DNA of 63,909 bases, filler included, from Hyphochytrium catenoides (taxonomy: Eukaryota; Protista; Hyphochytriomycota), in NCBI GenBank assembly GCA_900088475.1. It is 5 parts of 5 records of this genome, joined end to end, with 100 filler letters (N's around TTAATTAATTAA, not from the genome) between each part and the next. Parts side by side here need not be neighbours in the genome. Positions count along the whole stretch, not along the records: positions 1 to 27,681 come from FLMG01003493.1; 4 more parts are not named here. One strand, given 5' to 3'. Every line of letters starts with the position of its first letter. Position 1 is the stretch's first letter. Both the position numbers and the translations under genes were made by a program. Below the pieces are notes generated by a model. It ran no database searches. It had not been told where the DNA came from and worked only from the letters and a program-made list of their open reading frames with translations. Of the stretch, positions 1-26,801 are shown piece after piece.

Positions 1-859
1 CATTCTTCCTTAGGAACGCACCAAGCAAGTGATCAAGTCCAAGACTCCGAACACAGTGAGTATTCAAACACTGAACAGCACTCTGAGGACTCGGATGACC
101 AATCCTCGGAAGTATCGGAGGCATCGACCCTGCAACCGCAGCAGACGCAGATACAAGCTTGGAAGTCGACGAGTATGAGGACTGTGGTGAAACAGCTGAT
201 CTCAGCTCTGTATCCCAATTCATCCTTGGCACACAGGTACTCCCAGCAGGACTCGCTCTGGATGCGACCGGGAAGTCTCAGTCTGTTGGACGTTCAGGAA
301 CCAGCGACCTTAGAGGACACGTTGGCCTTCTCTGTTTCGGACCGTACAGGAGCCAGATCAATGATCTCATCGTAAAGGGACATTTTTATGATAGATAAGG
401 GTGTTGACCAGCTCTGTATGCAATGAAATTGATGAATGTGCGCTGGTTCTCAAGATCGAACGCCCGAAATCAAGAACATCATCGAAGCTTCGCATTCTTC
501 TTCTTCCTTGAGATTCTGATCCGTTTCAGGACAAAACTCCAACCCGCTTCGCAGCTTTTACTAAGGAAATCTATAGGATGAGAAATCAAAAGTACGGACT
601 TCAGGGTTTTAAGATGTAGCGATCTGTTGAGTTCGCAAGTCTTCATCCTATTTGTAAACAAGACAAGCCCTATACCCATGTGTAGCCTAGAGAATAGCAC
701 GTGAATAGGTATCGGTGCATCGATGGTGAAAATTCTAGACTTACACTTAAGTATTCCACAAAAGGGAGGCTCCAGGAGCTCTAGTTTTATAATATAAGAG
801 GTGGCAGCCAGGTTGATGGCAAAGTAGGCGCGATTCGGTGCATCACTTCCTAGTCTTTA

Positions 860-952
860 TTAGTCTCCATTTTGTTTATATACCAGGATTTTTCCTCCCT
901 CTGGGTCATCCCCTATACACTTCCTGGTTCCAGCGTCAATCACAGTTCAATA
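860..952 (-). repeat. Degenerate partial copy of LTR-A (U3 part, no clear tRNA cassette)
   Basis: tttgtttatataccagg...ccagcgtcaatcacagttcaata aligns by eye with the tttgtttatataccaggg...cagcgtcgatcacagttcaaca end of the LTR-A copies at 56336-56594 and 57431-57692. Confidence 0.55.
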
Positions 953-1790: not shown

Positions 1791-2223
1791 AATTTATTTG
1801 GGATTCGGAGAGAAGCTCATTATAATTTGCATAAAGACTTATGAAGCCAGAATGGGTAGGTCTTCTAAGCCAGTGTGGGTAGTCTCCTAAGGCCAGAGTG
1901 GGTAATCTTTAGTGCAGCTTGTGGGACCATATAGACTTTGGTATCCTGAATATGACTGCCTCCCATTTTCAAAATAGGGAGTAACTGTCCTTTCGAAGGC
2001 ATACATACAGTACATGTAAGCCATAATAGCTCAGCTCCTCTCCTTCCTTCATATTCTCAGCTTCACCTTGGAGTCTGTTCTGTGAGTGTACGGTAGCTCT
2101 GGTACACTTTAGCCCTATCAATAGCTTTAGGCTTCGCCTAGGGCTCGCCCGACGTTACTAGTGCGTAAACCAGCCTTCGGCTGCATTATTAGCGGAAGAT
2201 GCTTGGACGACACACTGATTTGG

Positions 2224-2479
2224 TGTTGAACTGTGATCGACACTGAAACCAAATAGTGTACAGCGGACGACGCAGAGGGGAAAATCCCTGGTATATAAAC
2301 AAAAACAGAGATTAGTTAAGTGTACGTTTGGTGTATGGTGCATACTGGTTAGGGTGTCGACATCAAAGGCAGAGGTCCTGGGTTCAAATCCCGGAGCGTA
2401 CAAAAACTTTTCTCCGGTATATCCAGACACCCCCCAATATTAATTCAAAGTGCTCACCATCCAAGGATAAAATCTAACA
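2224..2479 (+). mobile_element. Solo LTR (LTR-A) containing a tRNA-like cassette, nested in the Helitron 3' region
   Basis: TGTTGAAC...CTAACA termini and a perfect 5-bp TSD TTTGG (2219-2223 and 2480-2484). The two short Helitron copies show the empty site (gtacaactaaatcagtg). TATATAAA at 2292. Confidence 0.9.
2322..2402 (+). ncRNA. tRNA-derived Pol III cassette inside LTR-A (not a decoding tRNA)
   Basis: Acceptor stem GTACGTT/AGCGTAC, discriminator A, T-arm CTGGG-TTCAAAT-CCCGG (B box), A-box-like TGGTGTATGG and downstream TTTT. The D region is enlarged and the anticodon stem is poorly paired. Confidence 0.75.
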
Positions 2480-3481
2480 TTTGGTTGTACGAAGTAACAC
2501 CAGGAGCTCTTCATCTCTTCCTACATGTAGAAGCATCAGTATTTCCTAGATAATAGGCACACTCTACTCCTCGTTCACACACGCTTCCAACAGCAGAGTA
2601 GTGAGTGAGTGAGTGAGTGAGTGAGTGAGTGAATGGCGAAAGTTTCTCAACTCTTCAATTGCTGCAGGAGTTGCGTGACATGTCACCTCCACCCTCAGCT
2701 CCTACAGCTAAAGATACTGGAAAGTAGGTGATGCGTCTCAGGTAAAGTAAGGTTACATCACAAATTCGCCTGGAGGCACGCGATGTGTCTCGGTTTGTGG
2801 TGATACGTCTCGCGTTACAAATTCGAGTTATGTTCATAAAGACCCTTTCCCTTCCGCTCTGACCCCTTTATATCTCCAAAGTACACAAACAAAGACCCAA
2901 ACCCAAAGAAAAAACCCAAACAGTGATTAGTAAAAATCCAAATAGTGAAATTTTGATCACAAACACACAGATTCTTAGGACCCGTCGCTGCGCGACGGGA
3001 TGGATGGCGCTGAGCGTAAGCGAGCAGTTACATTGCGCTTTTGCTTCTGGTGTAAGTTGCTGCGTAGAATTCTATTGCTTCTTGCTGAAACAGTGCTCTT
3101 TTGAAATGTTCTTGGTACTGTGTTTTGCTTTGCTGCTTCTGTTACAGCTGTACCTATTGGAATGTTTCTGTTCTGTGATTGTTCTTTGCTTAGCATTGGC
3201 CTGTTTTCTATGGTGTTCTTGAAATCTAGGTTTGTCGTAATTGTGTAGGGCTCTAGTTTTTACTTAAGCTTTTACTACGGCTTTTGATTATTAGCCGCAA
3301 TGTTGTGTTGGTGTTAGTTGGGTGTGGGGAGGTGGGAAGCTTCTCAGCTTCTTGTTTTTGTCGTTTTGTTCTATGAATTTTCTTTGTTTTTTCCTTTGAA
3401 CTTCTTGAGGTGCGTGAGCGCTGCGTGGGATTTGGATGTGTCATTTGTAAAGATTCCGCGGTGCTGATCAAGACTCTGTTG

Positions 3482-4457: not shown

Positions 4458-7400
4458 CTATTGAAGAGCAGGTTGTAGACTGCGGAGTCTCTGCTCTTCG
4501 GCGATGAAAGGCGGAGGTATGAAGAAGTGGGAAGAATCTTCGCTTGTCAGTGGCTCCGACATTTGAAAGGCGTTTTTGCTCCCCACTCTAGAGGTTACCA
4601 CGTTCAGTGTTTGGTGTGGGGTTCTGCTGTAGTTTTCTCCCCTTCGTAGATCTCCTGCCAGCACAGCGACGTACGTGCCTCCCTGTAACTTTTCAGGTGT
4701 GAGAGCGAAGGCTGGGCTGATAACATGCTGGAAGACAGTTATCCGGAAGGCGCTATGGCGGTCTTTCAATCTCACTTCTATCTTCTGTTTTGCCGGAGGT
4801 AAGAGAAGATAGCCTGTCGGAAGTCCAGGGTACTGGGGTTGCTCTGCCCTTGATTCACAGAGCTTGATCAGAATGTAGTCTGGCACGTTTCTTAGTTGCC
4901 GCACCGTATAGCCTGGTGCTAGCTCTCGCTGGTGGTGGGAGGGCTCAGCATGACTAGGGAATATGGCGACAACATGTCCTTTGTCTCCGTTGCCCACACC
5001 TAGTGTATCTCGGAAAATGTTTGATACTATTTGGATGGGCATTCCTTTTCGCTTTGTTAGTGTGAGAATTATTGCGTATCGACAGCGTAGATTTTACCTG
5101 AGTAAGTCTCAAGGGACATACAGACTCTTCCAGTAACGTAGTCAGGAAGATGGCGGAGGGAGGAAATGGAATAGTTTCCTCTTGATATTAGATCCGCGTC
5201 CCACTGATAAACAGTAGGCCTCCTGGCTGGCGGCAGTTGTTGAATGACAAACCGTGTTAACTGGAAGTTAACGGCGCAACGAACCTAGGAGCGAAAAGCA
5301 TCAGGGGCTGTTTGCAAGGAAATATGCAAAATGATACCTTATTAAGGGCGATAGCGATGGGGATGAATTTTGGCGTGCTATCGTGCGGTAACTCGATTCG
5401 TCTCTCGTTGAGATATCTCAGATTTTCCGGAGAGAGAGGCACTGGCTTTTCCAATTCCAGCAAGAACTGAGCCCACTCAGGGTCACGGCGACACCGCATG
5501 TTTTCTTCGAGGAAGACGGAGACACTGACGCTCATGTACGCGGAATGTCCTTGTACTTCGGCGCTGGTGGCAGCTATCCTTGGACGGGTAAACAAAGGCT
5601 GTGAACGGACGCATGGTAGCTGCTTAAAGTCACCAGCGAAGAGTACATGATGTCCGGCAAAGAGTTTGTCAGTCACACATGCAAAGGTTCTAGTGGCTTC
5701 CTCAAAATTTCCCAAGAGTTGAGCTGGCACTATCGATATCTCATCGATAATGTGAAGCACAATTGCCGCTTGCTGTTGCTTTTGGGAGACTGTGGGAGCG
5801 CATTGGAGCATGTGGTGGCTGAATGGGTGAAGATTCCTGGCCGAGTGCATTGTCGTGCCACCGATGTTGAGCGCAGCGGTGGTTAGATATGCAGTTGGTT
5901 CTACGGCCTGGGGTCTTCGCCACCTTTCTGCTAGAGCCTTCAATGCATGAATGACCGTCGACTTGCCTCTGCCGGGCCCTCCTCCAAGAAAGATAATCGC
6001 TTGGTTGTCCAGAGGCGGGTGCTGCTGCTGAGCGAGTGCTTGGTCTGCTTCCTCCTTATGTCCTAGGTCGCACAGAAAGCGGTATATAAGAAGTCTGCCT
6101 ACCAACACTATCGCTCGATGCTGCATTTCGTTCGCACGGAAAGCCTGGGAGATCTCGGAGATCGATGCATAGAGAGGGAGATTGTGCGGGTCTTCAGCTG
6201 GCGTGTCCGGTGGCCTTTGCCATGCTGCTGGTTGTAGATACCGGACTACATTCAGACGTGTAGGACGTATGACGGGCTGCTGGCTTTCGCATTGTTGACT
6301 TCTCACTTGTAACCATTCTAGATATCGATCTCTTCTTGGTGGTTGAAAGGTTGAAGCAACGTGTGTTAGCGGCGTATAAAAATGCGCCATTCTCTCAAAA
6401 GTGTCTTGACGTCCCGGAAAATGAGTGGCAAGCAAATTGCTCGAGAATACGTCGTAGGCCTCGAGGGGTATGTCAGTTTGCGGATAGTCGCCGCCGCTAT
6501 CTTCAGCGTTTTCTTGAGGAGGATGTTGGTCATCATCAATTTCTTCGTCCTCGCCTGGTAGAAGAGACGTTGTTGGCGGAGGGATGACTCCAGATAAAAG
6601 TGGATGTTCTCTATTCGTCTCATCCTCTAGGTTGATGGTTGTTTCACGAGCCAGGCGGCGGCTAGCGTGAAAGTCGGTTTGCAAGGCGACGAAGTTCATG
6701 GCTGATGGGGTTCGCTCCCATTCGGTCCATGCCTCTGACCACGTTGATCCTGCGCTGCGAAGAGATTGCGTGCCTTGTGTAACCGGTCGGTGGGGCTTGA
6801 AGAGGAAGAGTATGATAGAAAAAAAGAATTCTTTGTCTTCAGCAGGGCAGTTTGGAGCTTCTATATCTGGTAATTCCTTGCCAACGATGTGCAAGACCTT
6901 ACGAGAGGTGTTAGGCGCGATATGTTTTCTATCTCGGTGCGGATGGCCTTCCAGCAATTGCATCGTCGTGTTTCTCGTAGCATTCTTTGCCAAGTGGTAG
7001 TTCTCGACAAAGTCGATAAAGGATATGTTTTTTAATGGTCCTGCCTCAGGGCGGTGCCAATAGTTGAGGACGTGGGATTGTATTTCTATACTGTCGTTGG
7101 GAGCATCGTTCTCTTCTGAAAGCGAGGTTGCAGATACTTCTAGAACGTCCTCTGCTTGCTGTCTTTGATCTGCGTCGTCAAACAGGTGTCTGAGGTGGAA
7201 AAGAATGCTGTGGGTAGATATTGTCACGAACTCTACAGAGAAAAGGAAAAAGCTGGAGTTGGAGAGGTACCACGCAGCCATCGGCGCGTGGATCTCTTGT
7301 TTGTTAGTCATGCCGTACAGCATACTCGATATCATCTTTGCTCCTCTTTGCTCTGGTGAGACAGCTGGGTCATTAACAGCAATACTGCTTCTATCATAGC

Positions 7401-9902
7401 ATGCTAGGCCAAACGCCACCAGGTTGTCTGCGACTATTTTTTGCTTGGTAACGTATTTGACGCAATACGCTACCCGATCCGCTGAGGTACCGTCTAAGAG
7501 AAGCTGGATATCGTGGTTGGACTTAAAAGCTTTGATAATAACAGGAGAGAAGGGTTGGATGTATTCACATCCGATAGGGCGTGGCAGTAAGAAGCCATTT
7601 CTGTCTAGCGCTGGTTCCTGTAGATATGCTTTTCTTGGGAAAGAGAATCGGCAGACATTTCCGGACGGCGTCCTTCTCGATTTCTATAGATCAAATCGTT
7701 AACGTTAGTAATACTGTTTTACTTTCCTATCTCTCTATTCCTACCTTGAAGCAGCTCGACATGTGCCTCCAGCTGTGCGTCAGCACGGTGAGGATAGTGA
7801 AAGTGAAAAGCAATATCTCGATTGCTATAGTACTTCCTAGGGAAGCCTCAAGTTCACCCGGCTGGCTTAGTCGGAAATCCAGGTCTTCAATGTTCAGCTC
7901 TTCGTCATCGTTAAGTCGTGTCAATCTCCGTTCAATCACTTCTGTGCTGGTGAATTCTGTGTGGCAGCTTTCACATTTAGATGTGAAGTGAGGCCCTGAC
8001 CGTGGTGGGGCTCGGCGGTAGGCTTCACCAGGAATTGGTTGTCGCGGCGCTAGCCGACCTTGGCAATTTGGCTCAGGGCACATGGTTACTCCTTCATTGT
8101 CAACGGGAAGATTGACTTCGGTTTTTACTAGGGAGCTGTGGTATCGTACTAGGGATTGCTTGTACTCTGCATTCTCACTGAGCATTCGCTGATTCTCCTG
8201 TGCCGTAGTTGGAAAGCCAGCTATCGCTAACACCATATGAGCGTGAAGAAAACCGCTCTCGTGAGGTTGAACAGCCACGAAGTACCATGTAGGATAGCCA
8301 AATAAGCCTGGCTGTCTTCTGGCTTTTCTCTGGTGAGTGTTCCAGCCGATGACTTCTTCAAGGAATACTTGCAGCACTCTCTTGAAATAGTCTGCGGCTG
8401 CAGTGCCATCAGCATTTGCCATCCTTTTTCTTTCGGATCGGTTAGGCGCTATTGTTCTGACTATGCTTCTCCAGTTGGGCATAGCCGACGCCTGGTGAAG
8501 GGGTCCATGAGAGCAACCTCGTACGATCCCGTTATGTCCGGAGAGAACGTAACAAATAAATGTGCAGAGCCGAATCTCTTTAGAAGACTGAATGCCTGGT
8601 CCCTAGCTCTTGAACGTTCATCGTTAGAGCCGGGAAAATAGGCTGCACCTAGTCTGATTCCTCTTCTCAGACTCAAATATGGGTTAACATTTTCTGGTCG
8701 AGCAGGAGCTGGTCTTCCCCGGCGCAAGCACTCCAAATACCGTTGTTCATAGAGAAGCCCAGCCTGCATTATCTCTCTATCAATGCTTCCAGCGCTTAGA
8801 GCGAGCCGGGTGCAGGGCAATTTGTACTTCAGCTGGCTATAAGCGTCCTGTCGACCAATCCAATCGAAGAGCACAAGCGAAAAAGAATGGTGTCTTGCGA
8901 AATGTCTACTTGATAGCTTTAAAACATGAGACACCCAAGCCTTTAGCGATATGGCAGTTCTTCGTCGCTCATCGGGCCCTCCTCCCACGGTAGTAGAGTT
9001 GGAAAGGTATCTGCGACTACTCTGGCATTACTATTGACGAAGAGATTCGACCTGCGGAAAACGTACGTTTCCTCCATTGTGGAGCAAGTGGTGTGTGACG
9101 TGATGAGAAATGTGCTTGTTTGCTCTCCTTCCGTATTATCGCTGTAACCACTTTGCTCCATTTCATTTACGACTGTCGCAGGTACAGGAGTGTTACTGTC
9201 CTCTGTCCTATCAACTATGATACCTACGCATGTGCCCATGTCAGAATAGCTTTTTAAAGCAGCATCCATAGCGCTTTTTACCTTCTGGTCTACAAGCTCT
9301 CTGAGCGTCTCCGAGTACTACAGCGCTGTAGCGAGGGTTGTTGACAGGACCGTCTTCTCTTTCTTGGCCTTTGAAGAACTGCAAGGCCGCCGTAACAGCA
9401 GGCATTCTTGCTAGGTAGGGTTCCTTTGCCGCAACTTTCTGCTCCGTTGTCATTGCACCGGCGAGGATGACGCGGATGCTTCCCACTGCACTTCTTGGTA
9501 GCATTGTCGCCATTGGTCCTGATGTGTTGGCTACTACGTAACAGTGAGACTTGAGCATCTGTCCTTGCCCTAATGAGAAAAAACGAACTCGCGTTAGAAT
9601 GATCAATAGGCATTGAAATAGTTTCCCTTACCGAAGCGAACAGTCGATATGAAGACAGCTGGTGAGACTATAGAAACCAATTCTTCCTCCGTCCGCGTCA
9701 GTGCTGCGAGCTCCGCAGGCCACTCTCCTATGGCTAGGCCGTTAGCAATGGCGAATTTGGGAGGGTCTTTGCTTCTTGAGAGGTGAGCGAAGCAAGTCCT
9801 GCAAATCATAGCCTCTGCCTGAGCACTTCCGTCCTCTAAAAGCTTTCTAGAGAAGCCTGCCACACTCAAATTATTATCGCATTGTTGACAACAGACAGAC
9901 AC
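4458..9902 (-). pseudogene. Helitron RepHel transposase (DUF6570-like N-terminus, HUH/Y2 Rep, PIF1 SF1B helicase), intron-containing and frameshifted
   Basis: Motifs PKFAIANGLAIGEWPAELAALTRTEE; FVTFSP; GLFG...GFLHAHMVL (HUH); HSWRHMSSCFK; CRFSFP; SNHDIQ...YCVKYVTK (Y2); GGPGRGKS; IIDEIS; FAGDFKQLPCV; FALTPEKLQG; SRV. GT-AG introns near 9570-9630, 7685-7745, 5285-5337 and 5045-5097. Apparent frameshifts near 8985, 8480 and possibly 9270. Confidence 0.9.
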
Positions 9903-16246: not shown

Positions 16247-18724
16247 ATGTCTCCTGATCCTGCTGTTACTCCTTCTTCACATCGAAGATCGCTGTGCTCT
16301 AGACGATCCAAGGCCCCGCTAGGACAAGCAGAGGAGGATGAGCCTTTGCAGGCGCTAGCGACAAAATTCATAGAGCATTTCCCGAGAACTTTGCGTGGAC
16401 CGAAAGGAAGAAAGATAGGCCGCGAGGCCGAGTATCCAGTCGTTTGGGCTGACGGCTCATCTGCGGGTAGGCAGACAATAGCTTCTTATCCAATCATGAG
16501 ACTGACTTGTTCTTCCTTTTACTTCTCCTCGTCCCTAGACGTACGCCTGCTCATGTCCACGGTGGCGCGGATGTACCCTTCAGAATTTACCTCCAGGCAT
16601 GAAGGAGGCTTTGACAGGCTTCTCTCAGCCTCAGACTCTACCCAGCTGGTTGGGCTCTCACGCCGCGATGGTGTGGAGGTCCTTCTTGAGGTAACTTGAA
16701 GAACGAGAACAGCTAAACCAGGAGCTCTTCCTTTCCTCTAAAATTCTTGCCCTCTGCTGGTATCACTTTTTCCTACCAATGACGGTCCTATTCTCACTCG
16801 TCTCCGATCCCACTTCTGTCACTCTGCTCGTCTCTGTCTTAGTGTCTATCTTTCTCTGTTTGTCTGCCTATCGCACTCTCTTCATTATATCTGCCTCTTC
16901 CTCATGCCATCTCTCGCTTCAATGATCAACATTCCTCTAGGTAGGTTGGGGCACTGTGGAGGTGGTCTCGGGCCCGTTTGATAGCCTCCATGAGATGGTG
17001 GAGGTCCATGAGAGTGCCATAGAGCGTCTAGTGGCCGGCGCAGAGGAGCTTGGAATGTTGCTTCTAGGATATGGCACACAGCCTCGGAGCCAGCCTTCCA
17101 CCAGCCTCATGTCGGGCAGGAACCGCTACCGGCTCCTGCATGAGGTGATAGGGGACCCATGGCTGGCCTTTACAGTGACGGCTAGCGACCAGGTTCACGT
17201 TGATGTCAGGAGAGACGAAGTCTTTGAGGTAACCAACCTGTGCAATCTTCTTGCGCCCGCGATCATAGCTCTCTGCGCAAACTCTGCAATTATCGGGGGT
17301 AAGCCATCGGGCTACTGTTGCGGACGGGAAGGCCTTATGGGGAAGGTCCAGCAAGACCTCTCTAGGCACGGGATGCCTTCAGGTGAGAGAGAGGAGGGGC
17401 GTCAAGGAGAAAGAGCTGCGGGGCTAGGGACTTAGTACTACACTCTCTCTAGGGCCTTTCAAGGATGAGAAGGACTTTATGCGCACTTTATCAGACTATC
17501 CGTTCCTCGTCATGCCTCATCGACGTGATGGCCACTACGTGAAGGTGCGGCCGGAGCAGAGCTTCAGAGAATATGTGCAGACACATGGAGCTGATTGGTA
17601 TCTCTCCTAAACACATGCATCGCAGTGAAGCTTCCTACTCAGCTACTTTTGATTTGAATGAATGCGCGTCGGTTGAATTCACTCTAACTTCCCTTCCGTA
17701 GGCTTGCTTTCCTAGCCCATGAGCACTACGTCTTTCACTCAGCTCGCCCACGGTCTAAACAGGTCACTGAAGAACTATGCATGGTGTCGTCGGTGGTCAC
17801 TTAAGCTTATTACTCATTCCTTAGGGCACAGTGGAGCTGAGGGCAGCCTGCCAGCAACCGTGGAGGAGCCACATGGCCGCTGCGGCTCTGCAGTGCGGGT
17901 TGGTAGAGGCCCATAGACAGGTGACGGAGGTAGTCCGGCGTCACATTGGCCACGAGCACGCGGTATGTGGCCACAGGGCCTCTTCGAGTGTTTAAATGTT
18001 GAGTGCTAACAGCAGGGAACAGGCCGGTACATGGAGACTGATGAGGAAGTGGAAGAATCATTTGGTGCGGCACGGCCTAGGCAAGCCGTTTGCACCTCCG
18101 ACCGCACATTGCGCAGGTCCAGTGCAGTTGGCTGAAGAGATTGTAGCGAGGTAAGGCTAGTAGCCTTGGCTCCTTTCTTTAGGAGGATGACCATATAACG
18201 GTTAGTGCAACACCTCACCTCCTACCGCTCTCTTCACCTAGTGCGTCCCACGAAGATTTTCAGCAGCTCCTTGCTTTGGTTTCGACTCTCGGCCTTAGAT
18301 TGGAGAATCCCGGAGAACTGGAGCATTTGGTTAAGATTTGCACTCTGGCTGGCAAGGTAAATGAGCCCGATAGGAACTCAAAGCAGACGTTTTGAGCTGT
18401 GACTAACCGCAGGTTTATTCTTCCTTATCGCAGGGAGAGAGCTTTTTACTGAAGGAACTGATAGCCTCACTCTATCCGCAGCTGGAGCTTGAGAGTCAGG
18501 ACCCATCGGCATTTGACCCCGCGAAGTTCCTATATGATGTTCTGCAGGCATGCGGCGAGGGCCTGCGGTCAAGAGGTCAGGGGGAGGAAGTCCATCTCCG
18601 AGATATAGAAGCAAGGCTCCAAATCAGGAAGAATCCTGCTGAAGAGTCACTGGTAGTGGCTGAGAGTGGTGGCATGGAGGCGCTTATAGCCCACACTGCA
18701 ATCAACAGCGCTTACTACAGATGA
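16247..18724 (+). CDS. Glutamate-cysteine ligase family 2 (GCS2, GshA/EgtA-like), multi-exon
   Basis: Motifs IGREAEYPVV, TVEVVSGP, LLGYGTQP, RNRY, TASDQVHVD, PAIIALCANS, HEHYVFHSARPR, GTVELRAACQQP, KNPAEESL. Short GT-AG introns; exon boundaries are approximate. Confidence 0.8.
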
Positions 18725-21888: not shown

Positions 21889-23202
21889 ATGTCTACCTTG
21901 GTAGACTACGAACAGTCTATTTATATGATGGAGCACACCACCGTCGAGCAGCGGCTTTATAGCTCGCCCACTTCAGCGTCCAATCTTCAAGCGCCGCGGC
22001 CAGACTACTTTCAATCCTTTAGCAGCGTAGACGGGCGACGGACGTCTTTCGATGGCATTGTGATGGACAAGGCACGATCGCTATCATCAGATGAGGATTC
22101 AGAAGGTAGTCCTAACAGCCAGCATCCAGCTTTGAAGACATCTCTCTATAAGACTGAGCTCTGTAAGCGCTGGTACGAATTTGGCACCTGCCGGTATGGG
22201 AGCAAGTGCCAATTCGCCCACGGCGACCACGAGCTTCGCCGCGTGCGACGACACCCGAAATATAAGACAGTAAAGTGTAGGTCTTACTGGAGCACTGGAC
22301 ATTGCCCTTACGGTCAGCGCTGCCGCTTCTTGCATGCAGAAGACCCCACACTGAACGGAGGTCTACTCTCTCCTCTTTCACCTCCCGGAGCGCTTGCCAG
22401 TCCAGGAGGAAATGGTCGGATTCGGACGAATTCTTTGCCGGCTCACTTGACGGGCGCTGCAGGTGGACTTGCTCCTCTTGGCCTGGCGCTGCCCAATGCC
22501 ACGGGTACAGCACTTTTTGGCTCTCGGGCTCTATTTGCTGAGGACGGACAGTCCGCGGGCACCGGGCAGCTGCATCATCTTCACGAAGGACCAGCAGCTA
22601 CTCGAAGACCGAGAGAGTTGTCCGAAGATTCATACTTTGTGACAGCTCCATTCCGGAGCGAGGGAGTGGATCTGAGATTGCACCCTGAGCTCGCCGATGT
22701 AGGCAAGCTTTATTCAACCTGGGCCTCCCCCATCTCTGAAGAGAGTCCCCTGGGCTCGTCTGCTGACCCTCATTCTGAAGCTCATCCGGGAAAGACGGCA
22801 GCCATGGATCATACGTCTCCACGCGGTCAGGAAGGGAATGGAAGAGAGTTTCGAAGTCGCGCAAAGAGCGCGAACTTTATAGGTTCAATGCACTCGTTTG
22901 AGGATGCGGGATGGAGACCTTTCGATGGCAACATCTGGAATGTCGAGCCCGCAGGTGCAGAGGGACGGAAGAGATCACCCTCGGCCGCTCTCGGTTCAGG
23001 CCGTTGGAGTACCTCGGGAGGACTAGACCTTAGCACTCTAGTGGCTGCCTTGGACGAACAAGATGCTTCGGACCCGATACCGGCGGAGAAGGAGGCTTTT
23101 GTTGCCGAGGTGGCTGAGGCTGTGCTCCTCGAGGACCAGGAAGGAAAAGAAGAAGAAGCCAGTGCAACTTCGCGTGCAGCTTTCGAGGGCGACGCGGAAT
23201 GA
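21889..23202 (+). CDS. Tristetraprolin/ZFP36/Cth1-like tandem CCCH zinc-finger ARE-binding protein
   Basis: Single 437-aa ORF containing YKTELC-x8-C-x5-C-x3-H, an 18-aa linker, and YKTVKC-x8-C-x5-C-x3-H. Confidence 0.93.

Positions 23203-25053: not shown

Positions 25054-26801
<1,748 letters not shown>

Follow-up and report, generated by a model that had tools for sequence, protein, structure and literature searches.

A candidate Helenus-type TRIM of a stramenopile-like protist with a PBS predicted to pair with the tRNA-like cassette of its own LTR

To prime reverse transcription, LTR retroelements and retroviruses generally use a tRNA of their host. Members of the Tf1 group instead use a piece of their own 5′ end: the Tf1 transcript folds back at its first 11 nt, which RNase H then removes. 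In Mauriceville-type mitochondrial retroplasmids and viral tRNA-like 3′ ends, the tRNA-like end is the start site on the template. The 5S part of Cassandra is unrelated to its PBS in the literature as summarised. Helenus (TRIMp3) elements, which are 311–1263 bp long, have been reported only from fungi, animals and Selaginella, and independent origins have been proposed for the different host groups (Kojima 2024, Biology 13:119; PMC10886601). That study looked for a priming role of the Helenus tRNA-like sequences and did not find one: in no family was the tRNA-like sequence of the LTR complementary to the PBS, and it was concluded that these sequences have no part in priming (PMC10886601). Here we describe an LTR family that, judged by its architecture, can be assigned to the Helenus type, and for which the sequences point to something new, namely a PBS complementary to the 3′ end of the element's own LTR cassette plus CCA.

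The starting point is a solo LTR in the window, by which we mean the whole 63,909-nt stretch of DNA (Table 1). The solo LTR arose by LTR-LTR recombination from a ~635-bp non-autonomous LTR retrotransposon. Its 5′ end reads TGTTGAAC and its 3′ end ATCTAACA, and TTTGG stands on both flanks, which bears out the ~256-bp TG...CA LTR with a perfect 5-bp duplication described in an earlier note on this DNA. The same note had pointed to a retained acceptor stem and T arm, to a TATA-like box about 30 nt upstream and to a TTTT run about 5 nt downstream. All of these were found, the box and the T run at the distances given in Table 1. The acceptor stem, GTACGTT/AGCGTAC, has 7 bp (6 Watson-Crick and one G.U), the T arm reads CTGGG-TTCAAAT-CCCGG, and both stems are present in the minimum-energy fold. 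The solo LTR is nested in a ~700-bp non-coding repeat, here called Y, which contains a (GTGA)n microsatellite. Elsewhere in the window there is a fragment of a related, older LTR, whose homology ends where the cassette would start, and a Helitron remnant.

Table 1. Positions of the solo LTR, its parts and other features within the window
Feature	Position	Strand	Remarks
Solo LTR, TG...CA, 256 bp	2224..2479	+	Helenus-type TRIM family by architecture; read directly
Left TSD copy TTTGG, 5 bp	2219..2223	.	Identical to 2480-2484
Right TSD copy TTTGG, 5 bp	2480..2484	.	Read directly
TATATAAA box	2292..2299	+	30 nt 5′ of the cassette's first base (2322)
Hypervariable base, cassette -1, T in the window copy	2321..2321	+	Putative U3/R boundary or transcript start
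tRNA-derived cassette, 81 nt	2322..2402	+	Fold, ARAGORN on the majority sequence, low variability
Acceptor 5′ strand	2322..2328	+	
T arm	2378..2394	+	
Acceptor 3′ strand	2395..2401	+	
Discriminator A	2402	+	
Cassette's last 11 nt, CGGAGCGTACA	2392..2402	+	Complements the family PBS once CCA is added
TTTT run, possible Pol III terminator	2408..2411	+	6 nt past the discriminator A (2402)
U3-only fragment of a related, older LTR	851..952	-	82% identity; BLAST, query positions 3-101
Repeat Y, ~700 bp, non-coding	2116..2969	-	Surrounds the solo LTR
(GTGA)n microsatellite in repeat Y	near 2600-2633		
Helitron remnant	4458..8988	-	ORFs with Helitron_like_N and PIF1/AAA helicase domains
GCS2 glutamate-cysteine ligase exon	16956..17435	+	Host gene
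Tandem CCCH zinc-finger protein	21889..23202	+	Host gene
UBC13-type E2	25574..26398	+	Host gene

The genome searched for further copies comprises 61 Mb in 4759 contigs. The search gave at least 179 candidate genomic copies of the LTR, of which the best 40 were scored at 92–100% identity. TG...CA ends are found again in the 46 full-length LTR copies, and the 5-bp duplication is perfect in twelve solo ones, which confirms the LTR family proposed from the few copies in the window. Eight full elements were retrieved, each with two LTRs of ~255 bp around a core of 124–129 bp (174 bp in one case). In these elements the PBS, TGGTGTACGCTCCG, lies directly 3′ of the CA of the 5′ LTR, and ...CCGGGGGAG precedes the 3′ LTR. 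The full element thus consists of two LTRs and a ~125-bp core with a PBS and a PPT, in all ~635 bp; the core is non-coding and has three hairpins. The 5-bp duplication is kept in most of the eight and is perfect in at least four, and the LTR pairs within full elements diverge by 1.6–7.5%. Such LTR-core-LTR pairs with PBS and PPT identify the element as a TRIM. Genome-wide, about 40–41 cores stand against at least 179 LTR candidates, and most LTRs are therefore solo.

A tRNA-derived SINE (SINE2) was considered and rejected, as the cassette begins 98 nt inside the TG...CA repeat; the copies paired around a PBS/PPT core and the fixed 5-bp duplications also rule it out. Some copies have been rearranged or interrupted. 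For example, in one copy (L076, C3148:970-1306) LTR positions 1–180 are joined directly to the start of a second LTR, giving the order U3-cassette-U3-cassette; like the CCA junctions described below, it breaks at the 3′ end of the cassette. In another (L097, C3425:6363-6852), a ~490-bp MITE with a TTAA duplication and piggyBac-like ends sits in the LTR spacer just 5′ of the cassette, and repeat Y is likewise inserted in the TATA-cassette spacer of a copy on contig C4563. Pol III-targeted integration upstream of the cassette, which two copies might have indicated, was rejected in favour of MITE-like elements targeting TA or TTAA in an AT-rich spacer. A second tRNA-like repeat (L071/L074) was examined for LTR structure and none was found. 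Two metagenome scans yielded no cross-species relatives of the family, the one match being a chance match inside coding sequence.

The 81-nt cassette in the LTR is a tRNA derivative but not a decoder, as the earlier note had held. In the majority LTR of the family, ARAGORN calls positions 99–179, i.e. the exact span of the cassette, as tRNA-?(Pro|Pro)(aggg). In this call the anticodon has 4 bases (AGGG) and lies in an 8-nt loop, the D arm is short and the variable region is long. The extra length thus falls in the variable region of the majority sequence and not, as had been thought, in an enlarged D region. The copy in the window is too mutated to be recognised: ARAGORN found no tRNA in the piece of the window that holds it, and the Rfam tRNA model gave no match to this copy at E ≤ 10. 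A better-preserved copy scored 16.8 bits against the Rfam cut-off of 29. A functional tRNA gene was rejected on these grounds (sub-threshold Rfam score, 4-base anticodon, no ARAGORN call in that piece), and a weak Rfam match to Giardia U6 (13.5 bits, E = 4) was treated as chance. The minimum-energy fold of the window cassette retains a 7-bp acceptor stem and a 5-bp T stem, with z = -1.08. Box B, as GGTTCAAATCC or GGTTCGAATCC, occurs at 83 genomic sites, and for box A there is a loose match only (TGGTG...TGG). The T4 run downstream of the cassette is the only one in the LTR and internal majority sequences, and its first T is altered in 6 of 46 copies.

Variants were counted with a majority-rule LTR reference as the coordinate frame. 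Within the LTR, variability is lowest in the cassette, at 0.017 substitutions per site per copy, 2–7 times below the rest: the corresponding values are 0.032 for the 5′ part of U3, 0.052 for U5 and 0.128 for the 22-nt spacer from the TATA box to the cassette. Although the sequence of this spacer is the most variable in the LTR, the TATA-cassette spacing is fixed across copies. Variants common to several copies, which record change in lineages that were transposing, occur at 9 of 81 cassette sites and at 69 of 174 sites elsewhere in the LTR (Fisher p = 2e-6). The earlier claim that the cassette is maintained, and does not decay at the rate of its flanks, is supported by these counts. The further claim, that its top half (acceptor stem and T arm) is kept preferentially, is not borne out: per site and copy, 0.017 substitutions were counted in the top-half stems, compared with 0.019 in the middle. 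The counts support constraint on the cassette as a whole, not on the top half alone.

The conservation could also be that of youth, in which case the cassette would be a decaying relic of a tRNA or SINE insertion with no present role. The family is young, its copies being 92–95% alike; of the 25 changes in cassette stems, 8 keep the pair, 17 break it and none is compensatory; and the z-score of the fold is modest. The absence of compensatory changes is itself attributable to the youth of the family. However, compared with the remainder of the same LTR, the cassette has a fourfold lower frequency of variants that subfamilies have in common (p about 1e-19), a scarcity for which youth cannot account. 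In addition, both polymorphisms that are frequent in the cassette fall where change is tolerated, one at the purine in the T loop (tRNA position 57, where A and G are both canonical) and one at a site in the middle. With the match between cassette and PBS described below also taken into account, we consider a functionless relic very improbable.

The base directly before the cassette (position -1) behaves differently from its surroundings. Of 96 copies, 56 have an A there, 32 a T, 5 a C and 3 a G, with invariant neighbours, and the base is identical in both LTRs of six full elements. Since untidy strand transfers are known in other LTR elements, we infer that this hypervariable base marks the U3/R boundary, which would put the start of the transcript at the first base of the cassette. 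The start had earlier been placed there from the TATA spacing, and a single hypervariable site directly before the cassette fits that placement.

The central observation concerns the PBS. Its sequence, TGG-TGTACGCTCCG, is the exact complement, over 14 nt, of the last 11 nt of the cassette (CGGAGCGTACA) followed by CCA. The DNA 3′ of the cassette reads AAA(A)C, not CCA, so the TGG has no counterpart in the DNA past the cassette, which indicates a tail added after transcription rather than an inverted DNA copy. The PBS-cassette duplex has an energy of -33.2 kcal/mol, compared with -12.8 ± 2.8 for 1000 shuffled primers, and the chance probability of an 11-nt match in this fixed register is about 2e-7. 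The first 30 nt of the core, which include the PBS, are about twice as conserved as the rest.

One explanation for the complementarity that does not involve priming is an intramolecular RNA structure, in which the PBS pairs with the 3′ acceptor strand of the cassette and thereby regulates packaging, processing or dimerisation. The PBS resembles the 5′ acceptor strand of the cassette, so that both would compete for one 3′ strand; conservation extends as a block over the first 30 nt of the core; and the arrangement can be likened to the U5-PBS stems of retroviruses. On the other hand, the minimum-energy fold of R-U5-PBS-core leaves the PBS unpaired with the cassette 3′ strand, and a complement of non-encoded CCA that abuts the LTR precisely is what marks a primer site of the tRNA type. 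Moreover, the element would not be spared the need for a primer, and none was found. A purely structural role for the match therefore seems improbable to us.

Additional evidence comes from variation in the PBS itself. Plus-strand strong-stop copying of a tRNA primer usually stops before tRNA position 58. In the copy at C4384:460531, the PBS variant TGGTGTACGCTCCGGGATTTAAC matches the cassette over 20 nt, and its first 18 nt (CCA included) are a copy of the cassette 3′ end, after which the family sequence resumes. These 18 nt would be what plus-strand strong-stop DNA copies from a primer made of cassette and CCA. Two observations of this kind count against self-priming. In the family at large, the PBS past nt 14 (AGCGATTTAAC...) is conserved yet differs from the cassette and forms a perfect 5-bp hairpin of its own, whereas copying of 18 nt in each cycle should leave more cassette-like versions. 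Moreover, one full element has G67C in both LTRs with its PBS unchanged.

Of 82 cassettes, 78 are followed by the usual trailer and one, owing to a deletion, by U5, while the remaining three lose LTR homology exactly after the discriminator. In two of these (C1131:~2456, L089, and C2516:~1438, L092), the LTR is intact from base 1 to the discriminator A and is followed by CCA and unrelated sequence. At C2516, the CCA may instead belong to a target duplication that is imperfect. The third (L068, C3117:1-1007) has LTR positions 1–180, then ACA, then the reverse complement from the LTR end to the D region of the cassette, followed by PBS and core. Such a structure would be expected if plus-strand synthesis had read through the CCA-tailed 3′ end of a full element RNA acting as primer, and it may thus be a fossil of minus-strand DNA still linked to its primer, though DNA recombination between the cassette and an inverted PBS could equally have produced it. 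Taken together, the three CCA/ACA junctions are suggestive, not decisive.

A host tRNA gene with an acceptor or 3′ end matching the PBS was searched for across the whole assembly by several patterns: a perfect acceptor pair at tRNA spacing; an acceptor pair with G.U allowed; the 3′ end wherever it lies outside LTRs and PBSs; the altered acceptor that a related element would call for; and A[A/G]CGTACA at the proper spacing behind any T loop. No such gene was found in the 61-Mb assembly, where the only tRNA-like matches were LTR cassettes, and the few remaining pattern matches were chance sequences without tRNA features. The T-loop pattern occurs at 83 sites, all of cassette type, and all 82 sites that were retrieved lie inside LTR homology. 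Among seventeen sampled host tRNA species, the PBS match was at most 5 nt. tRNA-Gln, which has its T arm in common with the cassette, was rejected as a primer because its acceptor stem is different. We also noted that contig C4759, probably the mitochondrial genome, carries at least 10 tRNA genes in a stretch of ~32 kb, and that short contigs hold duplicates of them.

These searches bear on the possibility that a host tRNA primes the element after all. The cassette would then be only a Pol III promoter or processing module, a role that has been proposed in other Helenus families, and the PBS would match it by descent from the same primer tRNA, for example if a retro-copy of the primer or a SINE derived from it landed in an ancestral LTR, the host gene being absent from the assembly. 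With 4759 contigs the assembly is fragmented, so that a host tRNA gene with a matching 3′ end could be missing from it. The conserved extension of the PBS, with its hairpin and its departure from the cassette, would also be at home under such a history, and all other Helenus families have host-tRNA PBSs (Kojima 2024, PMC10886601). However, tRNA genes are normally multi-copy, and loss of all copies from the assembly is unlikely. That the captured tRNA should by chance be the primer species has a probability of a few percent unless selection or mechanism favours it, and the CCA junctions described above carry U3 and the cassette body, not the body of a host tRNA.

Two related loci speak to the age of the PBS. 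The first (L066, C520:620-738) is an LTR-like unit of ~115 bp, with a TATA box and the U5 end of the family but without the cassette, preceded or followed by a PPT-like tract on one side and by the PBS and core of the family on the other; it may represent the empty state that preceded acquisition of the cassette, or a precise deletion. The second (L014, C2546:892-1000) belongs to a longer related element with the LTR end ...AGAGTAACA and the PBS TGGTGTACGTTGCGACC. The 5′ part of its core has 78% identity to that of the TRIM, for which its lineage may have been the source, and a solo LTR of the main family is inserted in its LTR. A weak resemblance of the L014 LTR to the cassette (score 44, versus 30 ± 5 for shuffles) was set aside. 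Since the PBS of both loci is identical or similar to that of the family, it may predate the cassette, which would fit a host primer tRNA ancestral to it. On balance, we regard priming by a host tRNA as a possible but rather unlikely alternative.

The reading that we put forward, and on which we are evenly balanced between belief and doubt, is that a cassette RNA, processed and CCA-tailed, primes reverse transcription of the element. The LTR would act as a small tRNA-type gene, with TATA at -30, an internal B box and, beyond a 5-nt trailer, a T4 run, and transcription would begin at or beside the first base of the cassette. RNase Z and the CCA-adding enzyme recognise an acceptor stem plus T arm. 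Because the cassette retains both, these tRNA-processing enzymes would be able to cut its RNA behind the discriminator A and to tail it with CCA. The RNA would thus end in ...CGGAGCGUACA-CCA and pair with the PBS, UGGUGUACGCUCCG, directly 3′ of the 5′ LTR. Minus-strand DNA synthesis would then be primed by the cassette RNA, whether as a free molecule or as the terminal part (3′) of a full-length element RNA. Reverse transcriptase and integrase would be borrowed from an autonomous element, probably a Copia, that gives 5-bp duplications. A Copia-type partner is indicated by these duplications and by the Copia debris near the copies. Only degraded Copia pieces were seen in those neighbourhoods, and no Copia with the family's PBS was found. 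To the broader proposition, that this LTR retroelement encodes its own reverse transcription primer, with every LTR, solo copies included, acting as a tRNA-mimic gene and the PBS co-adapted to it, we would give slightly less than even credence.

The identity of the host was examined through the host genes in the window. The best named matches of the CCCH zinc-finger protein, which cover the domain region only, are oomycetes (Achlya, Saprolegnia, Plasmopara, Pythium, Phytophthora, Albugo and Aphanomyces), while the UBC13-type E2 is too conserved to narrow the host lineage further. These matches, like the earlier attribution to a protist, suggest a stramenopile-like protist and nothing narrower. 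Occurrence in a protist would extend Helenus-type elements beyond fungi, animals and plants and would support repeated independent origins. If the proposed priming is true, a repeat-encoded tRNA mimic matched to its own PBS would be a third solution to priming, the element would be free of any host tRNA, its full-length RNAs might themselves end in a CCA-tailed module, and Helenus-type tRNA-like sequences would gain a second role besides that of Pol III promoter. There is also a practical side, in that such cassettes inflate tRNA gene counts and would yield tRNA-like small RNAs; annotation pipelines should recognise them.

The full TRIM copies with PBS and PPT bring the family close to Helenus/TRIMp3, as the earlier note had suggested, and their architecture fits the description by Kojima (2024). 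In both, two short LTRs, each with a tRNA-derived sequence and a conserved box B (GGTTC), enclose a short non-coding core with a PBS and a PPT, and ~635 bp falls within the range of 311–1263 bp. The TG...CA ends, the 5-bp duplications (as in fungal and plant families), the many solo LTRs and the lack of a credible decoder are also alike. The differences are the host, here a stramenopile-like protist, and the 14-nt match between PBS and cassette (11 encoded nucleotides plus CCA), which has no equivalent in the described families. An origin independent of the described Helenus families is likely.

Other known systems share single features with this element. Cassandra is also a TRIM whose LTRs carry a copy of a small-RNA gene with an internal Pol III promoter and a T run downstream, and tandem LTR-core-LTR arrays occur. 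However, the captured gene is 5S rRNA-derived there and tRNA-like here, and Cassandra is a plant lineage; membership in Cassandra or Ajax was rejected, as Rfam scans gave no 5S match. With Tf1/Tf2 the element would share a primer supplied by its own RNA that pairs with the PBS, with no need for a host tRNA. Priming of the Tf1 type itself was rejected: complementarity to the PBS lies in the last 11 nt of the cassette (nt 71–81), not in the first ~11 nt of the transcript, and the predicted 5′ end of the transcript, GUACGUUUGG, resembles the PBS rather than complementing it. The 3′ OH would here come from tRNA 3′ processing and CCA addition, and priming could act in trans from hundreds of solo LTRs. 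Retrozymes are likewise small non-coding LTR elements in which an RNA-processing module in the LTR defines the ends of the element RNA, but there a hammerhead ribozyme cleaves itself, whereas here a tRNA mimic would depend on host enzymes and no circular RNA is implied. Finally, Mauriceville-type retroplasmids and viral tRNA-like 3′ ends also involve a CCA-bearing tRNA-like end in the start of cDNA or RNA synthesis; the present case is a nuclear LTR element with a classical PBS, to which that end would anneal as the primer. We regard Cassandra, Tf1-type self-priming, retrozymes and the tRNA-like ends of retroplasmids as functional analogues of this element, not as its relatives.
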